The notes beneath the pieces were generated by a model. The model saw only the letters and a program-made list of their open reading frames with translations, searched no databases and was not told the DNA's origin. Both the position numbers and the translations under genes were made by a program. From positions 1,673,601-1,737,600 of the forward strand of contig OZ251237.1 of assembly GCA_965240325.2 (NCBI GenBank): 64,000 bases of DNA, in the 5' to 3' direction. The stretch comes from Rebecca billardiae RCC1528 (Eukaryota > Protista > Haptophyta). Shown here piece after piece: positions 5,551-14,606 of this stretch. Position 1 is the first letter of the stretch. Each line of letters starts with the position of its first letter.

Positions 5551-5569
5551 TACGATGCGCGACGACTAC

Positions 5570-5705
5570 GATATGATATGATATGATATGATATGATATG
5601 ATATGATATGATATGATATGATATGATATGATATGATATGATATGATATGATATATATATATATATATGATATATGGGGGTAGAGAGAGAGAGAGAGAGT
5701 AGAGA
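5570..5705. repeat. (ATATG)n microsatellite followed by (TA)n and (AG)n tracts
   Basis: Direct reading of the sequence. Confidence 0.95.
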
Positions 5706-6359: not shown

Positions 6360-7141
6360 CAGGGTCCCCAACAATTGTTCGGACACTGATTTTTGCTGAC
6401 TACGGCTGCTAACGATGAGATGGGCCAGAGGCTCACATGTGCGCCATGGACCTTACTCCTCGGATGACGACAGGGTGTGGGTGCAGCGAGCGGCGCGCTC
6501 AGCGTGTGGCCAGGGCTGGCTTGGATGTACAGCTCAACCGACTAGCGGTTGGCTCTGAACAGGTCCACGGAGCCCCCGCGGGTGGCATGCCTGCTAAAAT
6601 TCGTATCTGGCGCACGGTTGCATTTGGCGGCGGGCGGGTTGGTGCGCGCACTGGTGGGTCTCCAGCGTTCGCTGCGGGTAGTGGCGCCGACTGTAGCCCT
6701 TGCCTGCACGGCCAGAGCCGATCGATGGGCTGTGCAGCAGCTGTGCAAGCGAGGTGCGCAACTGGTAGGCTGGTCCGATCGGGCCGTATATACTCCTGGT
6801 GTAGCGCTACGTCCGGGCTTGCCCAGGGCTGTCGAGCGCATGCCGCATAGTCATCGACCATGCCACGTAATAATATCTGCGCGGCCTTGAGCGGGCTTGC
6901 TGGCTACAGACATGCGCAGAAGCCACACGGCTGCTTCACGGCCCTCACGACCAGCCTTGTGCCGACTGTCCGCATGACCCAGAGGGGTGCTCCACGCGGG
7001 CTGCCCGGCTATGCGCGGTCGCAGACAGACCTAGTGGGGTGCACACGAGCCGAGCTGGCCGCTCCTGACCCCGCGCGAGGCAGCCACAGGCCGTACGCTG
7101 AGCTGCTGCCCAAAGTGTCCAGTTTAATGTTGGAGACCCTG
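6360..7141 (+). mobile_element. 782-bp MITE (family C), solo copy
   Basis: TIRs CAGGGTC[C/T]CCAACA...GGACACT; TA at 6358-6359 and 7142-7143; near-identical to the reverse complement of 7988-8769 and 11579-12360. Confidence 0.92.
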
Positions 7142-7987
7142 TACCTCTCACGGCCGATGGCGGCCTCCACGTGCGTGAGGAATACGATTCGTGCACTCCT
7201 CGGTGACCGGTGAGTGCACGAATCCAGTTGCGGCGCTCGTCCGCCTCGTCGTCGTCGCGGCACGAGGTACATCCAACACCATGGGTCGGATCGCAGAACT
7301 CTCCGCGCGCTCGCGCTCGCGCGGCGAGGCACTGGCAGGCTTGTTCTTCATCTTGGCCAAGGCTGCAGCCTGCCAGATGCGCGAGAACGCGTGTGCATGC
7401 CTTTCCGCGCGTCATGAGTGCGCGTTGCACGCATCCTATCGCAGTCTACGCCGACGAGGCCTGAGCATCCACGTCAACCAGCCTGCCACGATCACGTTCA
7501 AATGCAGGCGGCAAGCTGCATGCGAGCGGCACGCAACGGAAGCATCTCAAGCCCGACAAAGTAGTGGCGGAGGAGCTTGTAGAGCTGGTGGCGATTGCGG
7601 TCTATCTGTTCATCACCTGTTCAGAGTCGCCAACTGACACGGGCGCGACGTAGCCAAGGTAGAGTGCCTGCAGCTTGCAGCAAGCCCGCAGCTGCCACCT
7701 CGGCGACGATCGTCACACAAACAACCGTGCGCCGCGACTGACCACTGTGTCAGGGCGAAGCACCAGGCAAGGCTAAGCAGCATGCCATGGCAACATCTTT
7801 GGCTACATGTCAGCGCGCTAGTACGAGAATGCGCCAACGACGTGCCATCAGTACTCCGCAATCGCGCCGGCACCGCACCAGCGGCCAAGCAGCCGCCATT
7901 TTGCCGCGTTTTGGCGGATGTCGCCGTGGGGCTCTCGTAGAATTAAAGGCTGTATAACCGCTCGGTTATGCGGGTTATATATATATA

Positions 7988-8769
7988 CAGGGTCTCCAAC
8001 ATTAAACTGGACACTTTGGGCAGCAGCTCAGCGTACGGCCTGTGGCTGCCTCGCGCGGGGTCAGGAGCGGCCAGCTCGGCTCGTGTGCACCCCACTAGGT
8101 CTGTCTGCGACCGCGCATAGCCGGACAGCCCGCGTGGAGCACCCCTCTGGGTCATGCGGACAGTCGGCACAAGGCTGGTCGTGAGGGCCGTGAAGCAGCC
8201 GTGTGGCTTCTGCGCATGTCTGTAGCCAGCAAGCCCGCTCAAGGCCGCGCAGATATTATTACGTGGCATGGTCGATGACTATGCGGCATGCGCTCGACAG
8301 CCCTGGGCAAGCCCGGACGTAGCGCTACACCAGGAGTATATACGGCCCGATCGGACCAGCCTACCTGTTGCGCACCTCGCTTGCACAGCTGCTGCACAGC
8401 CCATCGATCGGCTCTGGCCGTGCAGGCAAGGGCTACAGTCGGCGCCACTACCCGCAGCGAACGCTGGAGACCCACCAGTGCGCGCACCAACCCGCCCGCC
8501 GCCAAATGCAACCGTGCGCCAGATACGAATTTTAGCAGGCATGCCACCCGCGGGGGCTCCGTGGACCTGTTCAGAGCCAACCGCTAGTCGGTTGAGCTGT
8601 ACATCCAAGCCAGCCCTGGCCACACGCTGAGCGCGCCGCTCGCTGCACCCACACCCTGTCGTCATCCGAGGAGTAAGGTCCATGGCGCTCATGTGAGCCT
8701 CTGGCCCATCTCATCGTTAGCAGCCGTAGTCAGCAAAAATCAATGTCCGACCAATTGTTGGGGACCCTG
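7988..8769 (-). repeat. Family C 782-bp unit, left terminal repeat
   Basis: Starts CAGGGTCTCCAACATT and ends TTGTTGGGGACCCTG. Confidence 0.95.
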
Positions 8770-8879
8770 TGTGCACACTCGCTTGCCGCATGTTGAGTGA
8801 CTGTCAGCCAGGGAGCTGAAGACGACGGCTTCTCAGAGGCCGCGCGAGCTCGACGGCGGCGCGCGCGGGCACGGTGGGC

Positions 8880-9715
8880 TGGCGCGGCCCCGGCGCACGC
8901 CCATCCGGCCGCACGCCGCCGCGCCAGCCGCTCCTGCACGCGGGCTGACCGAGGCGCCAGCCTCACCCAACCGCCGCTGCTTGCCGTGGAGCTGGTCGGG
9001 AGATGATGGGGTGGGTCGGCTGCTCCCAGAAGCTCCCCACGCGCGCCGCGCGTGCTGCATGCGGGTGCGGCGGGTCGGCGCGGCCCCGCCGCGCGCCCAT
9101 CCGGCCGCGCGCCGCCGCGCCAGCCGCTCCTGCACCCGGGCTGACTCAGGCGTCAGCCTCACCCAACCGTGAGCCGCCAGCTGCTTGCCGTGGAGCTGGT
9201 CGGGAGATGATTTGGTGGGTCGGCTGCTCCCAGAAGCTCCCCACGCGCGCCGCGCGCGCTGCATACGGGTGCGGCGGGTCGGCGCGGCCCCGCCGCGCGC
9301 CCATCCGGCCGCACGCCGCCGCGCCAGCCGCTCCTGCACGCGGGCTGACTCAGGCGTCAGCCTCACCCAACCGTGAGCCGCCAGCTGCTTGCCGTGGAGC
9401 TGGTCGGGAGATGATTTGGTGGGTCGGCTGCTCCCAGAAGCTCCCCACGCGCGCCGCGCGCGCTGCATACGGGTGCGGCGGGTCGGCGCGGCCCCGCCGC
9501 GCGCCCATCCGGCCGCGCGCCGCCGCGCCAGTCGCTCCTGCACCCGCGCTGACTCAGGCGTCAGCCTCACCCAACCGTGAGCCGCCAGCTGCTTGCCGTG
9601 GAGCTGGTCGGGAGATGATGGGGTGGGTCGGCTGCTCCCAGAAGCTCCCCACGCGCGCCGCGCGCGCTGCGTGCGGGTGCGGCGGGTCGGCGCGGCCCCG
9701 CCGCGCGCCGATCCG
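8880..9715. repeat. 204-bp tandem repeat, about 4 copies
   Basis: GAGCTGGTCGGGAGATGAT recurs at about 8989, 9193, 9397 and 9601. Confidence 0.95.
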
Positions 9716-9838
9716 GCGCCATCTAGTCCGCCGCTAAGTCATCGGCGCAGCTCAGAATCTCAGTGCCATAGCTAGGCCGCGCAGCTGCCGCCTGTTACTC
9801 ATCGATCAGCTGATCTAAGTAATCATCAAAAGCGGCGG

Positions 9839-9881
<43 letters not shown>

Positions 9882-9892
9882 CTGCTCATTAC

Positions 9893-11146
9893 TTAGTGAC
9901 CAGTGTTCGCGCCATCCTTCTTGATGCAGAGCTCGAGACGGGCGAGCCAACCATCAAACAGCTTCGTCATAAACACTTTGTCACCGGTCACCTCTGCATA
10001 CATGTCCTTCACAGCCTGCTCAAAGTCCTGCTGTGACACGTACTTGCGCTGCCGCAGACCCATGCGCCGCACCATCTCAGCCCACACATTCTCAATCAAT
10101 GAGAGGTCAGGGCTCAGCGCAGGCCAGTCCCAAAAGCAGCGGCGGGTAAACTTCGTAATCACCTCTCTGCACTTCTGGCCTCGCTCAGTGCTCGGATGAA
10201 TAGTGTGGGCCCTCGCACCATCCTGCTGCCAGTACCAATCCTCACCTAGGTCGTTCTCTTCGAACAGCTTTGCCATGTCGCGGAGCATCTGGAGCAAGAT
10301 GTTGTTCTGGTACTCCTTCGAGGTCACACCGCGCTTCTTCTTGGGCGGGGCTTCGGTGGGGTTACCATCCTCATCGTAGTCGTCAGCTTCGACCTTGAAT
10401 GCTGTACCAGAGACTTTGGTGATGAGCCTGCTCGCACCCCACCAGCAAATGGCGGCGTATGCGTGCACGCGGAAGCGGCGACCAGTCGGCGCGTCGTCAG
10501 GCTCGTGGTTCTCGCAGCGCACCTTCCACTGCCCGGTGGGCCCCAGCTCGTCCGAGATGAAGATCTTCGAGTCGCTGAAGCTCACTGACTGCTTGAACTT
10601 CTTCCTCCCTCGGTCAGTTGCCCGCTTGACGATGGCCTTACACCACGCAACGCGCTTCTTCTTGTGCGCCTTCTTGAGCGTGTACTTCTTGCCGATGCGA
10701 TTCCGCGAGTAGTACGCGCTGATGCGCAGCTTGATCTCCTTGCTCCAAGTCGTGAGGCCGGCAATGCTCAGGTCGCACACCTCACGCAAGGAATGCACCT
10801 TGCCAGTCTTGATCTTTGCTGCTGCCTCGTCAGCGTCTACTGCCGGCACGCTTGGGGGGCGGCCACGCCCTTCGAGCACCGCGCCCACCACCCCAGTCTC
10901 CTCCCACTTCTTGTAGATGTCGTACCCACCAGCCTTGCTCACACCAAACAAGCCCGCAGCGACCGCCATCGGCATGCCGTAGAGGTGAAGGATGATGAGA
11001 CCCCAGTGCCGACCCTCGCGGCTGATCTGGCTAGGGCCATCACCATGCGTGTGCTTGCGCGCACGCTCGCCCGCCTCCGCATTGGTGCCACCCCTCGTGA
11101 TCCCCAGGAGCAGCATCCACCAAGCCACTGGCTGCCGCGGCGCCAT
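9893..11146 (-). CDS. IS630/Tc1/mariner transposase, 417 aa, intact ORF, DD42E
   Basis: N-terminal HTH-like segment plus GRGRPP; catalytic motifs FSDSKIF, WQQDGARAH and WPALSPDLSLIENVW; C-terminal RLELCIKKDGANTGH resembles Tc1 ends. Confidence 0.93.
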   Translation of the reverse strand: MAPRQPVAWWMLLLGITRGGTNAEAGERARKHTHGDGPSQISREGRHWGLIILHLYGMPMAVAAGLFGVSKAGGYDIYKKWEETGVVGAVLEGRGRPPSVPAVDADEAAAKIKTGKVHSLREVCDLSIAGLTTWSKEIKLRISAYYSRNRIGKKYTLKKAHKKKRVAWCKAIVKRATDRGRKKFKQSVSFSDSKIFISDELGPTGQWKVRCENHEPDDAPTGRRFRVHAYAAICWWGASRLITKVSGTAFKVEADDYDEDGNPTEAPPKKKRGVTSKEYQNNILLQMLRDMAKLFEENDLGEDWYWQQDGARAHTIHPSTERGQKCREVITKFTRRCFWDWPALSPDLSLIENVWAEMVRRMGLRQRKYVSQQDFEQAVKDMYAEVTGDKVFMTKLFDGWLARLELCIKKDGANTGH

Positions 11147-11578
11147 GGCTGCCGAAGATCCGCACGGAATCGGCCGGGCATCAGACAGCAGTACCCGAAT
11201 AACGGTTCATCGCGCAGTAACGTCGAAAGCAATGCCTGCCGGCCGCGGCGCGCCGGCGCGCAGGTCAGCACGGCGGGCACGCGCTGGTACGGACCACTGT
11301 GGTGCTCCTGCGAGCAGCTGCTGACGCGTTGGCGCGATGAGACCAGCGTCCTCGCAAACCCGTGACCAGGTGGCCCAGTGCCACTGCCCTGCCTCCACAC
11401 GCTAGTCGAGGGAGTGACGCGTGCCGAATGTGTCTCGCCGGATGACCACCAAGGCTGCTGTCAATAAATATGAGGTGGGTCACGTCGACAACCCGAACTG
11501 CTGGGTGTCTATTTGAAATATACTCCGCAGATTCTGCCAGTGGCAGCTACGGAGCTACGCTCGTCGCCGAGATACCTT

Positions 11579-12360
11579 CAGGGTCTCCAACACTAAACTG
11601 GACACTTTGGGCAGCAGCTCAGCGTACGGCCTGTGGCTGCCTCGCGCGGGGTCAGGAGCGGCCAGCTCGGCTCGTGTGCACCCCACTAGGTCTGTCTGCG
11701 ACCGCGCATAGCCGGACAGCCCGCGTGGAGCACCCCTCTGGGTCATGCGGACAGTCGGCACAAGGCTGGTCGTGAGGGCCGTGAAGCAGCCGTGTGGCTT
11801 CTGCGCATGTCTGTAGCCAGCAAGCCCGCTCAAGGCCGCGCAGATATTATTACGTGGCATGGTCGATGACTATGCGGCATGCGCTCGACAGCCCTGGGCA
11901 AGCCCGGACGTAGCGCTACACCAGGAGTATATACGGCCCGATCGGACCAGCCTACCTGTTGCGCACCTCGCTTGCACAGCTGCTGCACAGCCCATCGATC
12001 GGCTCTGGCCGTGCAGGCAAGGGCTACAGTCGGCGCCACTACCCGCAGCGAACGCTGGAGACCCACCAGTGCGCGCACCAACCCGCCCGCCGCCAAATGC
12101 AACCGTGCGCCAGATACGAATTTTAGCAGGCATGCCACCCGCGGGGGCTCCGTGGACCTGTTCAGAGCCAACCGCTAGTCGGTTGAGCTGTACATCCAAG
12201 CCAGCCCTGGCCACACGCTGAGCGCGCCGCTCGCTGCACCCACACCCTGTCGTCATCCGAGGAGTAAGGTCCATGGCGCTCATGTGAGCCTCTGGCCCAT
12301 CTCATCGTTAGCAGCCGTAGTCAGCAAAAATCAATGTCCGACCAATTGTTGGGGACCCTG
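11579..12360 (-). repeat. Family C 782-bp unit, right terminal repeat
   Basis: Direct repeat of 7988-8769; I noticed one difference (CACTAAA vs CATTAAA). Confidence 0.95.
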
Positions 12361-12368
12361 TATATATA

Positions 12369-12689
12369 ACTCACCGGTAGCCCTCATGAGGGCGGGCTGG
12401 CAGCCAGGGTCCGGCTGCCCGAAGGTTTTCCGGTCGTCAAGCTGAGCCAGGCCCGGACAGGGGTGGGCGCGGATCCGCGCAGTAGCCTGGGCACGCGATG
12501 CGCGTCTCTGCGCGCGCTCGCTGGCTGCACCCGCGGCTCGGCGGCCGGCGTGGCTGCTGGGTCACCGCGGCGCTGGTGGCTGCCCCTCCTCTGGGAGTTG
12601 TTTCTCCCTGCCCTCCCACCCGGCTGGTTGCTGGGTGGGCATGGCCTGGGTGCGCGCGGTGTACTCTCATGTGGGTCTACCGAGTGAGT
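12369..12689. mobile_element. ~320-bp MITE (family D)
   Basis: Left end ACTCACCGGTAGCCCTCATGAG vs right-end reverse complement ACTCACTCGGTAGACCCACATGAG; TATA on both sides; interior and right end are homologous to 61519-62464. Confidence 0.75.
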
Positions 12690-12726
12690 TATACAGGCCA
12701 GACGGAGAGAGAGACGAGGGAGATCA

Positions 12727-12728
<2 letters not shown>

Positions 12729-12798
<70 letters not shown>
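12729..12798. repeat. (AG)n microsatellite
   Basis: Direct reading. Confidence 0.95.
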
Positions 12799-12799
<1 letters not shown>

Positions 12800-13056
12800 A
12801 GTATATATAGTAGTAGCAGCATCAGCAGTGATATGATGACGATGATGATATGCTATGATTCTGACGCAGCGGGCGGCTCGATAGCTCGTCGCGTAATCGC
12901 ACACCGTGCGCACACATCGGCGGGCGCCCCCTGTGTCTGCAGCCCAGCCGGCTTGAGCAGCGCCACCGGCGCTGCCATCCCTGCACCAGCATGCTGCTGA
13001 TTCGCGTGCCTGAGCGGCGCCTGCGCGCTGGCCGCCGCACCGCACGGGCCCGTTGC

Positions 13057-14484
13057 TCAGCGGCGCGCACAGCGCAGGGGCGGCAGCTGCACCGCGCGCT
13101 GCGGCATCGGCTGCGCTCCGCCGTCGTCGCCCACACCTAGGCCGAGCGCACCCGAACGCTTGCCGCATGCGTGCACGCCGCCATCCGCCGTGACGTAGAG
13201 AGCGTGACATCGGCCGAGTGAGCAGTCGACCACGCGCGCATGTGCGAGGCCGTCCACCCGCTCGGGCAGCGCGCGATCCTCTCGGTCCCCCAGCCCCAGC
13301 TGGCCGTAGAGGTTGAGCCCAAACGCGTGCACGCTGCCGTCCGCGCACACCACCGCGCTGCTGTGCAGGCCCGCGCTGGCGCGCACGACCCGCACGCCCA
13401 TCAGTGCTTCGATGCGCGTGGGCACCAAACGACGCGTCTGGTCGCCCTGACCATGCTCGCCATAACAACTACCGCCTCCGAAGGAGTGCACGCCGCCCGC
13501 TGCGTCCACCACCAGGCTGTGGAACTCGCCCGCGCTCACGTGCACGGCGTGCACGCCCACGAGCGCCTTGATGCGCCGCGGCGTGCCCTTGTGCTGCTGG
13601 TTACCGTGGCCAAGGCGGCCGTCCTTGGCCTTCCCGCACGAGTACACGGCGCCGCACGCCGAGAGCAGCAGCGTGTGCGCCCAGCCCGCGGCCACGCCGC
13701 CCACGCGCACGCCATGCAGGGCCTGGATGCGGGTCGGCTCCAGCCGGTGCTTCCTGTCGCCGTGGCCGAGCTGGCCATCGCCGTTGTCGCCCCAGCTGTA
13801 CGCCGCGCCCGCCGCCGTCAGCGCGAGGCTGTGGTCGGCGCTAGCGCAAATGCCGACGACGAGCTCCGCGCCCAGCGCCGCCACCCGCACGAACGCCCGT
13901 CGCTCAGCCTTGTCGCCCACGCCCAGCTGGCCGTACCGGTTGTGGCCGCACGCGTACACCGCGCCCGCCTCGCTCAGCGCGAGCAGGTGCTTGATGCCGG
14001 CAGCCACCGCGCGCACGTGCACCGCCTCGAGCGAGGCCACGCGCGTCGGCACGAGCACGCGCGTCTGCCCGCTGAGCTCGGGGTGGCCCAGCGGTGCGCC
14101 GCACGTGTGCACGCCGCCGTCCGCGTCGACAAACGCGCTGAACGCGTCGTCATACGATCCACCGGAGGCTGCACTGTGCGTGTGCTCGTGCGCGAGCTCG
14201 AGCATACGCTCGCGCGCGAGCAGCTCCTCCGCCCACGTGGACACGCCCGCCGGCAGAGTGGCTGGCAGCGCGGCCTCATGCCCGCGCGCGCGCGCGCGCT
14301 CGCGCAGCGCGTGCTCGAGCGGCGCGCCGCTGAAGAGGCGCGCGGCGGCGTTGGCGGCGGCGAGGTCGCGCGTGCCATCGAGGTGCACGATGATGCGCGC
14401 GACGAGCTCGGGCGGCACGTCGGTCAGCCGCACGGCAGCCGCTGCCGAGCGCGCCTTGGCGCGCGCGCGCGTCGTCGGCGCCAT
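13057..14484 (-). CDS. F-box-like + RCC1-repeat beta-propeller protein, paralog 1
   Basis: LTDVPPELVARIIVHL..DL F-box-like motif; repeated VYxxGxNxxGQLGxGD...P and xAGxxHxLxL RCC1 blades; intronless. Confidence 0.9.
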   Translation of the reverse strand: MAPTTRARAKARSAAAAVRLTDVPPELVARIIVHLDGTRDLAAANAAARLFSGAPLEHALRERARARGHEAALPATLPAGVSTWAEELLARERMLELAHEHTHSAASGGSYDDAFSAFVDADGGVHTCGAPLGHPELSGQTRVLVPTRVASLEAVHVRAVAAGIKHLLALSEAGAVYACGHNRYGQLGVGDKAERRAFVRVAALGAELVVGICASADHSLALTAAGAAYSWGDNGDGQLGHGDRKHRLEPTRIQALHGVRVGGVAAGWAHTLLLSACGAVYSCGKAKDGRLGHGNQQHKGTPRRIKALVGVHAVHVSAGEFHSLVVDAAGGVHSFGGGSCYGEHGQGDQTRRLVPTRIEALMGVRVVRASAGLHSSAVVCADGSVHAFGLNLYGQLGLGDREDRALPERVDGLAHARVVDCSLGRCHALYVTADGGVHACGKRSGALGLGVGDDGGAQPMPQRAVQLPPLRCARR

Positions 14485-14606
14485 GCTGCGCGAACCCGTC
14501 GTCGTTTTGTGGCGGCGACGAAAAAAGCAGCCGCTATTAAAATCGGCGGGGTGCACGATGGAGTGAGGCCCAGTTACGATACGCTCAGGACCTCCAGGCT
14601 GGCGAC

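Follow-up and report, generated by a model that had tools for sequence, protein, structure and literature searches.

A composite-like Tc1/mariner/IS630 transposon with TIR-bounded long terminal direct repeats in the haptophyte Rebecca billardiae

The window, a stretch of 64,000 nucleotides from contig OZ251237.1 of Rebecca billardiae, contains an intact transposase gene enclosed by two long direct repeats, each of which is itself bounded by terminal inverted repeats (TIRs). The genome of this alga is GC-rich. The locus raises the question which part of it is the mobile unit: the whole assembly, the repeats only, or neither. The original prediction regarded all 4,373 bp as one autonomous element, from which solo repeats arise by recombination or by excision of a single unit.

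Anatomy of the element and placement of its transposase

The element at positions 7988-12360 consists of a long terminal direct repeat (LTDR; unit U, 782 bp), an internal region (INT; 2,809 bp) and a second LTDR. The features of the locus are:

6360..7141, minus strand: solo LTDR, an inverted 782-bp unit with TA on either side and an older (ancestral-type) haplotype
7986..7987: left TA target-site duplicate, situated in a (TA)n run
7988..8769, plus strand: left LTDR, 782 bp, bounded by imperfect TIRs of its own (about 26 bp; 7988-8013 and 8744-8769)
8770..11578, plus strand: INT, 2,809 bp, without TIRs; first bases TGTGCACA, last bases ATACCTT
8856..9717: tandem repeat of 204 bp in about 4.2 copies, 3' of the transposase gene
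9839..9882: (CT)n microsatellite adjoining the transposase stop codon
9893..11146, minus strand: intact open reading frame of a 417-aa Tc1/IS630-type transposase with the triad D192, D309, E352 (DD42E)
11144..11578, minus strand: 435-bp 5' region, from the ATG to the upstream LTDR
11579..12360, plus strand: right LTDR, 782 bp, with one mismatch to the left LTDR
12361..12362: right TA target-site duplicate

Both LTDRs lie in direct orientation and differ at a single base (99.87% identity). The repeat starts with CAGGGTCTCCAAC and ends with GTTGGGGACCCTG, which form an imperfect TIR of about 26 bp. The dinucleotide TA is found only at the outermost ends, and the inner junctions read CCCTG/TG and TT/CAGGG (slash, boundary between LTDR and INT). 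No TIR was detected in INT, for which local alignment of one end with the other gave a best score of 8. The outermost ends of the whole unit are inverted (CAGGGTC...GACCCTG), but belong to the LTDRs. The layout originally described, including the TIR-bounded repeats around an intact transposase, the restriction of TA to the outer ends, the inner junctions (given as CTG/TG and TT/CAG) and the TIR-free interior, was thus reproduced in full, as was the stand-alone third unit between two TA, which proved to be inverted. Since the haplotype of this solo LTDR is of the older, ancestral type, it was not derived from the neighbouring element.

LTDR and INT lack any similarity and have not one 12-mer in common, which rules out the LTDR as an internal-deletion derivative of INT. 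The 435-bp 5' region is precisely the piece retained by every transposase-deleted derivative, and the copy number of the 204-bp tandem repeat differs among loci. Pfam searches gave no match for open reading frames in the LTDR, in the tandem repeats or antisense to the transposase; a single sub-threshold hit to SPAN was dismissed as noise. By the same searches, neither INT nor LTDR contains a second domain-bearing open reading frame, and a His-Me homing endonuclease was not found.

The residues D192, D309 and E352 were invariant in the transposase alignment A1. The RNase-H-like Pfam domain DDE_3 matched all ten aligned members with a best E-value of 5.4e-20, the window transposase scoring 27.5 bits, slightly below the cut-off of 28.6. 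This protein also matched the catalytic domain of SB100X (E-value 2.7e-5). With regard to the N-terminal paired-like helix-turn-helix DNA-binding domain of the superfamily, its residues 50-88 were weakly matched by HTH_23 (E-value 0.015), and HTH_32 matched five of its relatives with E-values down to 1e-6. Reverse transcriptase and integrase domains were not found, as Pfam gave only DDE_3 and HTH matches. Judged from its sequence, the element is a member of the Tc1/mariner/IS630 (ITm) superfamily, as indicated by the DDE_3 triad, the TA flanks, the inverted outer ends and the CAG footprints described below.

Copies, footprints and alleles in the genome and in related families

The composite structure is present at 12 loci on 10 contigs, comprising two autonomous copies and ten non-autonomous loci. 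All 12 exhibit identical, non-TA inner junctions. At 11 of the loci, which are unrelated sites, TA occurs on both outer sides; in the twelfth the left LTDR is truncated. Further loci of the same structure, with constant inner junctions and different TA sites, had been predicted. The genome encodes only two copies of the transposase, both intact and both within LTDR-INT-LTDR; no transposase of this family was found in the genome outside such a structure or with ordinary TIRs. The ten non-autonomous loci have one breakpoint in common, INT position 2375 at the ATG, and therefore represent a single deletion derivative that was amplified with both LTDRs attached.

At least 15 solo LTDRs exist in the genome. 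TA was present on both sides in 10 of the 15 shown; in the other five, mostly diverged, the aligned unit falls short of an end and the flank is not readable. The genome also contains (LTDR-INT)n-LTDR multimers such as U-INT-U-INT-U arrays, the trace expected of unequal recombination between the repeats. Excision of single units has left its trace in INT-CAG-INT junctions: three INT-INT junctions, located in two arrays, have the sequence TT-CAG-TG, in which the initial 3 nt of the LTDR stand between the flanks. Both routes to solo copies in the original prediction are therefore reflected in the genome. The CAG agrees with the canonical 3-nt footprint of Tc1-type elements, which is C(A/T)G for Sleeping Beauty (PMC6943129), and points indirectly to Tc1-type cut-and-paste events with transposon-derived footprints.

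In run X1, a different read set of this organism, one contig passes directly from position 7974 to 12365, leaving out the element. It constitutes the predicted empty-site allele, and the element is polymorphic for presence and absence. The short side of this contig measures only 24 nt, and its junction is 17 nt of (TA)n off a simple TA duplication. A contig from a separate read set spans the right inner junction (11209-11608). Among sequencing runs on record as RNA, none was found containing the stretch. Runs X2 and X3 gave no contig for it.

The LTDRs of the composite loci fall into two haplotypes. All 21 at the ten non-autonomous loci were pure N and all four of the autonomous copies pure A, none of them being chimeric, whereas the near-intact solos were mixed (about 5 N, 4 A and 3 ancestral). 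Subfamily-diagnostic as well as copy-private variants occur in both LTDRs of one element, the latter in copy C39 of the window family and in copy C33 of family 2. The LTDRs evolved stepwise in a single lineage, with intermediate solo copies. Because pure cut-and-paste alone leaves variants in both LTDRs unexplained, additional gene conversion must be assumed.

LTDR-INT-LTDR structures were also found in two other transposase families of this genome and in about six from metagenome contigs, in the latter within single contigs. In this genome the three families are each paired with an LTDR family of their own, the TIRs being related. Only coordinates were used for the C1/C7 arrays of family 2 and for family 3 on its far side. 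LTDR length ranged from 758 to 812 bp across families, and the LTDR bodies of different families were unalignable, a weak V/V' match excepted. Of 15 inner flanks read in 8 families, not one was TA. The relative L088, contained in one contig, has the inner flanks TC and GA, the outer flank TA and an INT of only 1,700 bp with one open reading frame. Several metagenome contigs of relatives self-close as LTDR+INT circles or multimers, an outcome equally expected from circles, multimers or collapsed direct repeats. In the closest outside homologues (P0001, P0008; L083-L085) the contigs are of insufficient length to reveal repeats, and for P0005 no DNA is on record. An identity of family 2 with the published Tc1-Mariner 'Luffy' of Tisochrysis lutea was unsupported: the family-2 termini are absent from the Luffy files, and the Luffy indels measure 2,564-2,566 bp with CTA(G) homology. 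As far as these sequences tell, LTDR-INT-LTDR is the standard design of the whole transposase lineage, in which nine families display it. The original prediction needs correction in two points: the arrangement is no one-off composite, and it has a precedent in KolobokP, whose architecture is the same (PMC9587614).

Proposed mechanism and alternative explanations

The results are best explained by an autonomous, probably still active composite-like Tc1/mariner/IS630 transposon of the structure LTDR-INT-LTDR that would move by cut-and-paste, a reading to which we assign a probability of about 0.75. It builds on the directly observed anatomy, recurrence, TA flanks, footprints, multimers, concerted LTDRs and presence/absence polymorphism, from which we infer the synapsed ends and the cut-and-paste chemistry. 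The checks named in the original prediction all favoured the claim that the 4,373-bp unit is the autonomous element, which would transpose from its outer ends. The INT-encoded transposase would bind to both TIRs of every 782-bp LTDR. When the outermost TIRs of the left and right side pair, the whole unit would move into a TA, and the deletion derivatives lacking the transposase gene would be mobilized in trans in this way as well. If instead the two TIRs of one LTDR pair, this LTDR alone would be excised, which would leave the 3-nt CAG footprint and seed MITE-like solo copies. More solos, and the (LTDR-INT)n-LTDR multimers, may come from unequal homologous exchange or gene conversion between LTDRs, processes which may also hold both LTDRs of an element identical. 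The TA-less flanks might perhaps shield the inner ends, but the CAG footprints speak against this notion, since two ends without TA must have been cut to produce them. For Sleeping Beauty, a preprint reported that excision required a TA on at least one flank (10.1101/659086).

An unlikely alternative resembles the translocatable units of IS26. The non-coding LTDR would be the true transposon, and the transposase gene would ride on an extrachromosomal circle of one LTDR and INT, freed by recombination between LTDRs. Replicative (nick-and-paste) insertion of the LTDR at a TA would fuse the circle to the target and duplicate the LTDR, resulting in LTDR-INT-LTDR with TA at the outer ends only. Such cointegrates would explain why the LTDRs are always in direct orientation, why no inner flank is TA and why LTDRs evolved stepwise in one lineage with intermediate solos. 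They would also account for left and right LTDRs that are alike down to their private variants, although gene conversion would be an ordinary and sufficient cause of this identity in 782-bp repeats with 2-3 kb between them. The self-closing metagenome contigs fit the proposed circles, but no better than they fit collapsed direct repeats or multimers. The CAG footprints, in contrast, show double-strand excision by this enzyme, and the model requires replicative transposition, which is not known to occur among Tc1/mariner enzymes. If the model is true, eukaryotes would have an equivalent of the IS26 translocatable units, generated by an enzyme of the Tc1/mariner type, and the private variants common to both repeats of a copy, as in LTRs, would be explained. 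A similar circle model was raised by Kojima and Bao for KolobokP (PMC9587614).

It is very improbable that only the LTDR transposes and INT spreads by homologous recombination of an LTDR+INT circle into a resident solo LTDR, a route drawn in Fig. 5b1 of the KolobokP paper (PMC9587614). This route keeps the TA flanks and the inner junctions, solo LTDRs are common and the multimers show that LTDR-LTDR recombination occurs. However, random integration into the mixed solos would yield the observed pure N and pure A composites with a probability of about (5/12)^10, roughly 1e-4, and the empty and full alleles also speak against it. A chance arrangement of two MITEs beside a TIR-less transposase gene, or a repeat duplicated by the assembler, has nothing in its favour apart from the single locus viewed alone, and deserves hardly any credence given the identical junctions at 12 loci on 10 contigs and the 8 other families with the same design. 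An assembly artefact, which the original prediction had named as a risk, is excluded because 12 loci share the structure and an independent contig crosses the right inner junction.

Significance and comparison with known systems

The element adds to KolobokP a second, independent occurrence of LTDR-INT-LTDR, this time from a protist and within the cut-and-paste superfamily that has been studied best; such a design is thus a recurrent solution and not a curiosity. As solos, multimers and INT-INT forms occur here without a homing endonuclease, multimers need no element-encoded endonuclease, a point of relevance to the model of induced crossover put forward for KolobokP. Two features call for a mechanism, namely the LTDR length, held tightly at 758-812 bp despite unalignable bodies, and inner flanks that are never TA. 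The family offers a natural, sequence-defined path from an autonomous element to a MITE, with footprints that can be read straight from the genome. Pipelines for the annotation of transposable elements likely split such elements into a MITE and an orphan transposase, or misfile them as LTR, TRIM or LARD. Because the copies appear to be young and polymorphic, culture experiments on the system should be feasible.

KolobokP, whose composite-like DNA transposons were called unique among DNA transposons (Kojima and Bao 2022, Mob DNA 13:24, PMC9587614), is the closest known case; the window element is like KolobokP in its workings, but is not a member. In both, each LTDR has short TIRs, INT encodes the transposase, target-site duplications are confined to the outer ends and the LTDRs are of constrained length, and both are accompanied by many solo LTDRs, (LTDR-INT)n-LTDR multimers, deletion derivatives and LTDR-(INT)n-LTDR forms, the INT-INT junctions of which are ascribed to LTDR excision. 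KolobokP belongs to the Kolobok superfamily of animals, has non-TA duplications and carries a homing endonuclease, whereas the algal element is Tc1/mariner-like (DDE_3, similar to Sleeping Beauty), targets TA and lacks a His-Me endonuclease or any second gene. The INT-INT junctions of KolobokP show microdeletions of 3-4 bp instead of a clean +3-nt footprint, and its LTDRs measure about 450 or 660 bp compared with about 760-810 bp here.

Conventional Tc1/mariner elements and their MITEs (Sleeping Beauty, Tc1, Stowaway-type) share DDE_3, the TA target, CAG termini, the 3-nt C(A/T)G footprint and short non-coding TIR units moved in trans. In these elements one TIR pair directly brackets the gene and the D-to-E spacing is 34; here, the spacing is 42, the gene segment is devoid of usable TIRs and a full 782-bp unit with TIRs on both sides forms either end, the two units pointing the same way. 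Bacterial composite transposons and IS26 pseudo-compound transposons likewise consist of two small mobile units that bracket a co-moving segment and can move alone, and IS26 also has direct repeats and uses a one-repeat circle as intermediate. The bacterial composites are assembled ad hoc, with the enzyme in the flanking insertion sequence and cargo in the middle, while here the flanks are non-coding, the enzyme lies in the middle and a whole lineage has inherited the design. With LTR retrotransposons the element has in common long direct terminal repeats, solo repeats, repeat-sharing tandem arrays and element-specific variants in both repeats. Those elements encode reverse transcriptase and integrase and are characterized by TG..CA ends and target-site duplications of 4-6 bp; the element of R. 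billardiae, in contrast, exhibits CAG..CTG ends, 26-bp TIRs and a TA duplication, and leaves DNA excision footprints.

Structure of the element and its transposase

Repeat finding and direct reading of the window bore out the unit-interior-unit anatomy of the original prediction. Two direct copies of the 782-bp long terminal direct repeat (LTDR, abbreviated U in arrays), one base apart, enclose an interior (INT) of 2,809 bp, and the outer flanks of the element are TA. Each LTDR starts with CAGGGTCTCCAAC and ends with GTTGGGGACCCTG; these ends form an imperfect terminal inverted repeat (TIR) of about 26 bp. At the inner junctions the sequence is CCCTG|TG and TT|CAGGG, and comparison of the ends of INT revealed no terminal inverted repeat.

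Features of the element and the adjacent unit (window coordinates)
6360-7141, inverted: third LTDR unit, TA on both sides
7988-8769: left LTDR, direct repeat of the right LTDR
8856-9717: 204-bp tandem repeat, about 4.2 copies, in the left part of INT
9839-9882: (CT)n run in INT, between tandem repeat and ORF
9893-11146, minus strand: transposase ORF in INT, 417 aa
Between transposase ORF and right LTDR: 435-bp segment of INT
11579-12360: right LTDR, direct repeat of the left LTDR

The region is bracketed by a (TATGA)n microsatellite (5557-5669) and a (GA)n run (12716-12810), the latter complementary to the (CT)n within the element. An ORF for a 499-aa protein with RCC1-like repeats (13057-14556, minus strand) begins some 700 bp away from it.

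The 417-aa protein matched the Pfam domain DDE_3 slightly below threshold (27.5 bits) and, in a search of PDB sequences, the catalytic domain of the Sleeping Beauty transposase SB100X (E 2.7e-5) in an alignment that takes in its motifs QQDGA and SPDLSLIENVW. When aligned with nine relatives, D192, D309 and E352 were invariant, and the spacing of 42 residues between the latter two defines a DD42E signature. DDE_3 was matched by all ten aligned proteins and IS630/Tc1-type HTH domains by several of them. The protein has few relatives: among 5.8 billion proteins screened by a word-seeded search, 13 matched, the best with 41% identity. None of the other ORFs in the element had a domain match, which indicates the lack of a nuclease or second gene.

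Copies, derivatives and probable excision footprints in the host genome

INT and LTDR were searched against the host assembly (72 Mb in 41 contigs, the window being part of contig C20), and 25 regions were retrieved and annotated. A second autonomous copy (C29:736988-741368) has a 99.5% identical INT, an intact transposase and LTDRs at both ends; outside these two copies the genome search detected no transposase of the window family. Ten more loci carry one deletion derivative, INT', in which INT positions 1 to 372, 576, 780 or 948 are fused to 2375-2809. Its right breakpoint is single (INT position 2375, window 11144) and lies exactly at the transposase ATG; the left end differs between loci solely by the number of 204-bp repeats. 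The deletion takes out the entire transposase ORF and spares the entire 435-bp upstream segment.

LTDR-INT'-LTDR monomers were present at six loci (C13, C3, two on C12, C39 and C14), and one non-autonomous copy has a left LTDR truncated to positions 433-782 (L032, C29:1194627-1197385). Multimers were U-INT'-U-INT'-U on C33, U-INT'-CAG-INT'-U on C21 and U-INT'-CAG-INT'-CAG-INT'-U-INT'-U on C19. All window-family loci share the inner junctions of the window element, and all complete ones have TA...TA outer flanks in unrelated surroundings. The genome thus holds what the original prediction had named as support, further unit-interior-unit loci with identical inner junctions at differing TA-flanked sites. 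At least 15 solo LTDRs were found among 40 scored of 74 candidates. TA flanked ten of these 15 on both sides; for the remaining five, mostly diverged copies, the alignment breaks off before an end of the unit and leaves the flank there unreadable.

The three INT'-INT' junctions read ...ATACCTT CAG TGTGCAC..., in which precisely the three leading bases of the LTDR stand between the two inner flanks. In Tc1/mariner transposition, cleavage of the non-transferred strand takes place a few nucleotides within the element. Sleeping Beauty canonically leaves its three end bases, CAG or CTG, between the flanks as a footprint (PMC6943129). The INT'-CAG-INT' junctions match this footprint, as expected if a single internal LTDR had been excised from a multimer. 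Since an 8-bp indel separates the C19 from the C21 array in every INT' copy, at least two separate excision events likely gave rise to these junctions. Sleeping Beauty was described in a preprint to require at least one flanking TA (10.1101/659086). The CAG footprints imply cutting at two TA-less ends, which weakens our inference that TA-less inner flanks bias cutting to the outer ends; any such protection would be partial at best.

A separate read set of the same organism (run X1; Logan contigs that differ from the assembly by SNPs) covers part of the window, and its contigs were compared over 7500-12900. One contig (11209-11608) spans the right INT-LTDR junction and another consists of U and the C13 flank. 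A third connects 7974 with 12365 and is missing 4,390 nt, which corresponds to the element (4,373 bp) and 17 nt of the (TA)n beside it. At 24 nt, the shorter arm of this joint is under the 31-nt threshold for joints, yet the joint lies exactly at the expected position, and we read the contig as the allele without the element that the original prediction had called for. A CAG or CTG footprint was not seen at the joint in this one contig, which fits a site that was never occupied. The (TA)n around the element (7975-7987 and 12361-12368) is 17 nt longer, both sides summed, than in the empty allele, so full and empty site do not differ by a simple TA duplication. In another X1 contig, 12692 is joined back to 7951 by an intervening GGT; this may reflect a tandem duplication of the empty-site region in the sample or an artefact of the contig graph at the (GA)n at 12716-12810.

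Sister families with the same layout

The host genome contains two further transposase families with 30-33% identity to the window family. Family 2 comprises at least 23 intact ORFs (433-457 aa, 33% identical to the window transposase; loci L059-L082). Its INT, with the ends AGTGAGCAG...CTGCTCACT, is bracketed by direct repeats of a 796-bp unit, V (TAGGGACCCAC...GTGAGGGACTA), and V-INT-V was found on C39, C33, C10, C35 and C17. The left and the right V show 100% identity and have TA on the outside, and on C33 both V copies carry a private variant. The coordinates of V and ORFs suggest that two V units enclose three INT copies on C30 and four on C7; the INT-INT junction, read in the C30 array only, is TA. 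A 417-bp satellite begins at the INT terminus, so that the left end of INT occurs several times in tandem. The single autonomous copy of family 3 (L058) is enclosed by a pair of identical 812-bp units (C11:81400-82211 and 87465-88276). The family also includes many pairs and arrays that are non-coding, the largest with seven units on C7; the spacing within arrays is constant at 3,923 bp (C7) or 2,683 bp.

Loci of the sister families
Family 2: C39:346487-352490; C33:372922-378925; C10:3433668-3439254; C30:255140-270929; C7:2670038-2687327
Family 3, arrays: C7:3631430-3655779; C11:1815387-1824247

In all three host families a tandem repeat of 204, 417 or 415 bp (8856-9717; L062:1-1364; L058:2732-4107) follows shortly downstream of the transposase gene, in a copy number that varies from locus to locus. 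Some relatives from metagenomes are without such a repeat, e.g. L088, with an INT of just 1,700 bp.

Outside this genome, L068 (37% identity) is a self-closing 3,217-bp sequence of a 798-bp TIR-bounded unit and INT. The single contig L088 comprises the last 126 nt of an LTDR, the 1,700-bp one-ORF INT and a complete 792-bp LTDR (TIR of at least 23 bp) that is followed by TA. LTDRs of 758-772 bp adjoin the transposase gene in L094/L095, L098, L089/L091 and L092/L093. Across nine families LTDR length is 758-812 bp with unalignable bodies. The visible outer flanks are TA, which was not seen among the 15 inner flanks read (TG, TT, AG, CT, GA, TC, CA). Judged from these sequences, the LTDR-INT-LTDR design is lineage-wide.

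The dinucleotides flanking the LTDRs at the inner junctions were compared for L068, L088, L091, L094, L098 and the window element (8769/8770, 11578/11579). In five of seven families they are mutually reverse complementary (CA..TG, CT..AG, GA..TC), a symmetry that extends over 9 bp in family 2 and over 7 bp in L098. INT accordingly bears vestigial inverted ends.

Evolution of the repeats and mode of transposition

Among 37 aligned LTDRs, six sites distinguish two haplotypes: the two autonomous copies carry A in each of their four LTDRs, and 21 of 21 LTDRs at non-autonomous loci are N. Old, diverged solos have an ancestral haplotype and two solos (C12:1031877 and C3:3933348) intermediate ones. 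A private T>C is present in the left and right LTDR of the C39 element, and a private 2-bp insertion is common to two of three LTDRs in the C33 array. These patterns indicate that LTDRs evolve as a single lineage, in the manner of LTRs. Such a lineage does not arise by cut-and-paste alone; gene conversion or unequal exchange, or one template for both repeats, is required, and the multimers show that unequal exchange takes place. A spread of INT through recombination into solo LTDRs already in place is argued against by the lack of chimeric LTDRs among the 37, despite mixed solo types; uniform, non-chimeric LTDRs would then have a rough probability of (5/12)^10.

We favour, with a probability of about three in four, a composite-like Tc1/mariner element whose outer TIRs would mobilise the whole LTDR-INT-LTDR as one unit, whose transposase would also release LTDRs singly and which would be remodelled by homologous exchange between LTDRs. 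The main alternative, an IS26-like route through a circle of LTDR and INT and replicative duplication of the LTDR, would explain in one step why the LTDRs are directly oriented, why the inner junctions lack TA and why left and right LTDR are identical, but it demands a chemistry not known in this superfamily and is considered unlikely.

For the composite-like architecture, one precedent was found in the literature searched, the KolobokP transposons of animals, described by their authors as unlike any other DNA transposon (PMC9587614). Monomers, solos, multimers, INT-INT forms, deletion derivatives and a constrained LTDR length, i.e. every population feature of KolobokP, are common to the present lineage. 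The authors ascribed the KolobokP multimers to an element-encoded homing endonuclease (PMC9587614). In contrast, the lineage described here is part of another superfamily, with TA as its target and clean 3-nt footprints, and has this architecture without an endonuclease.
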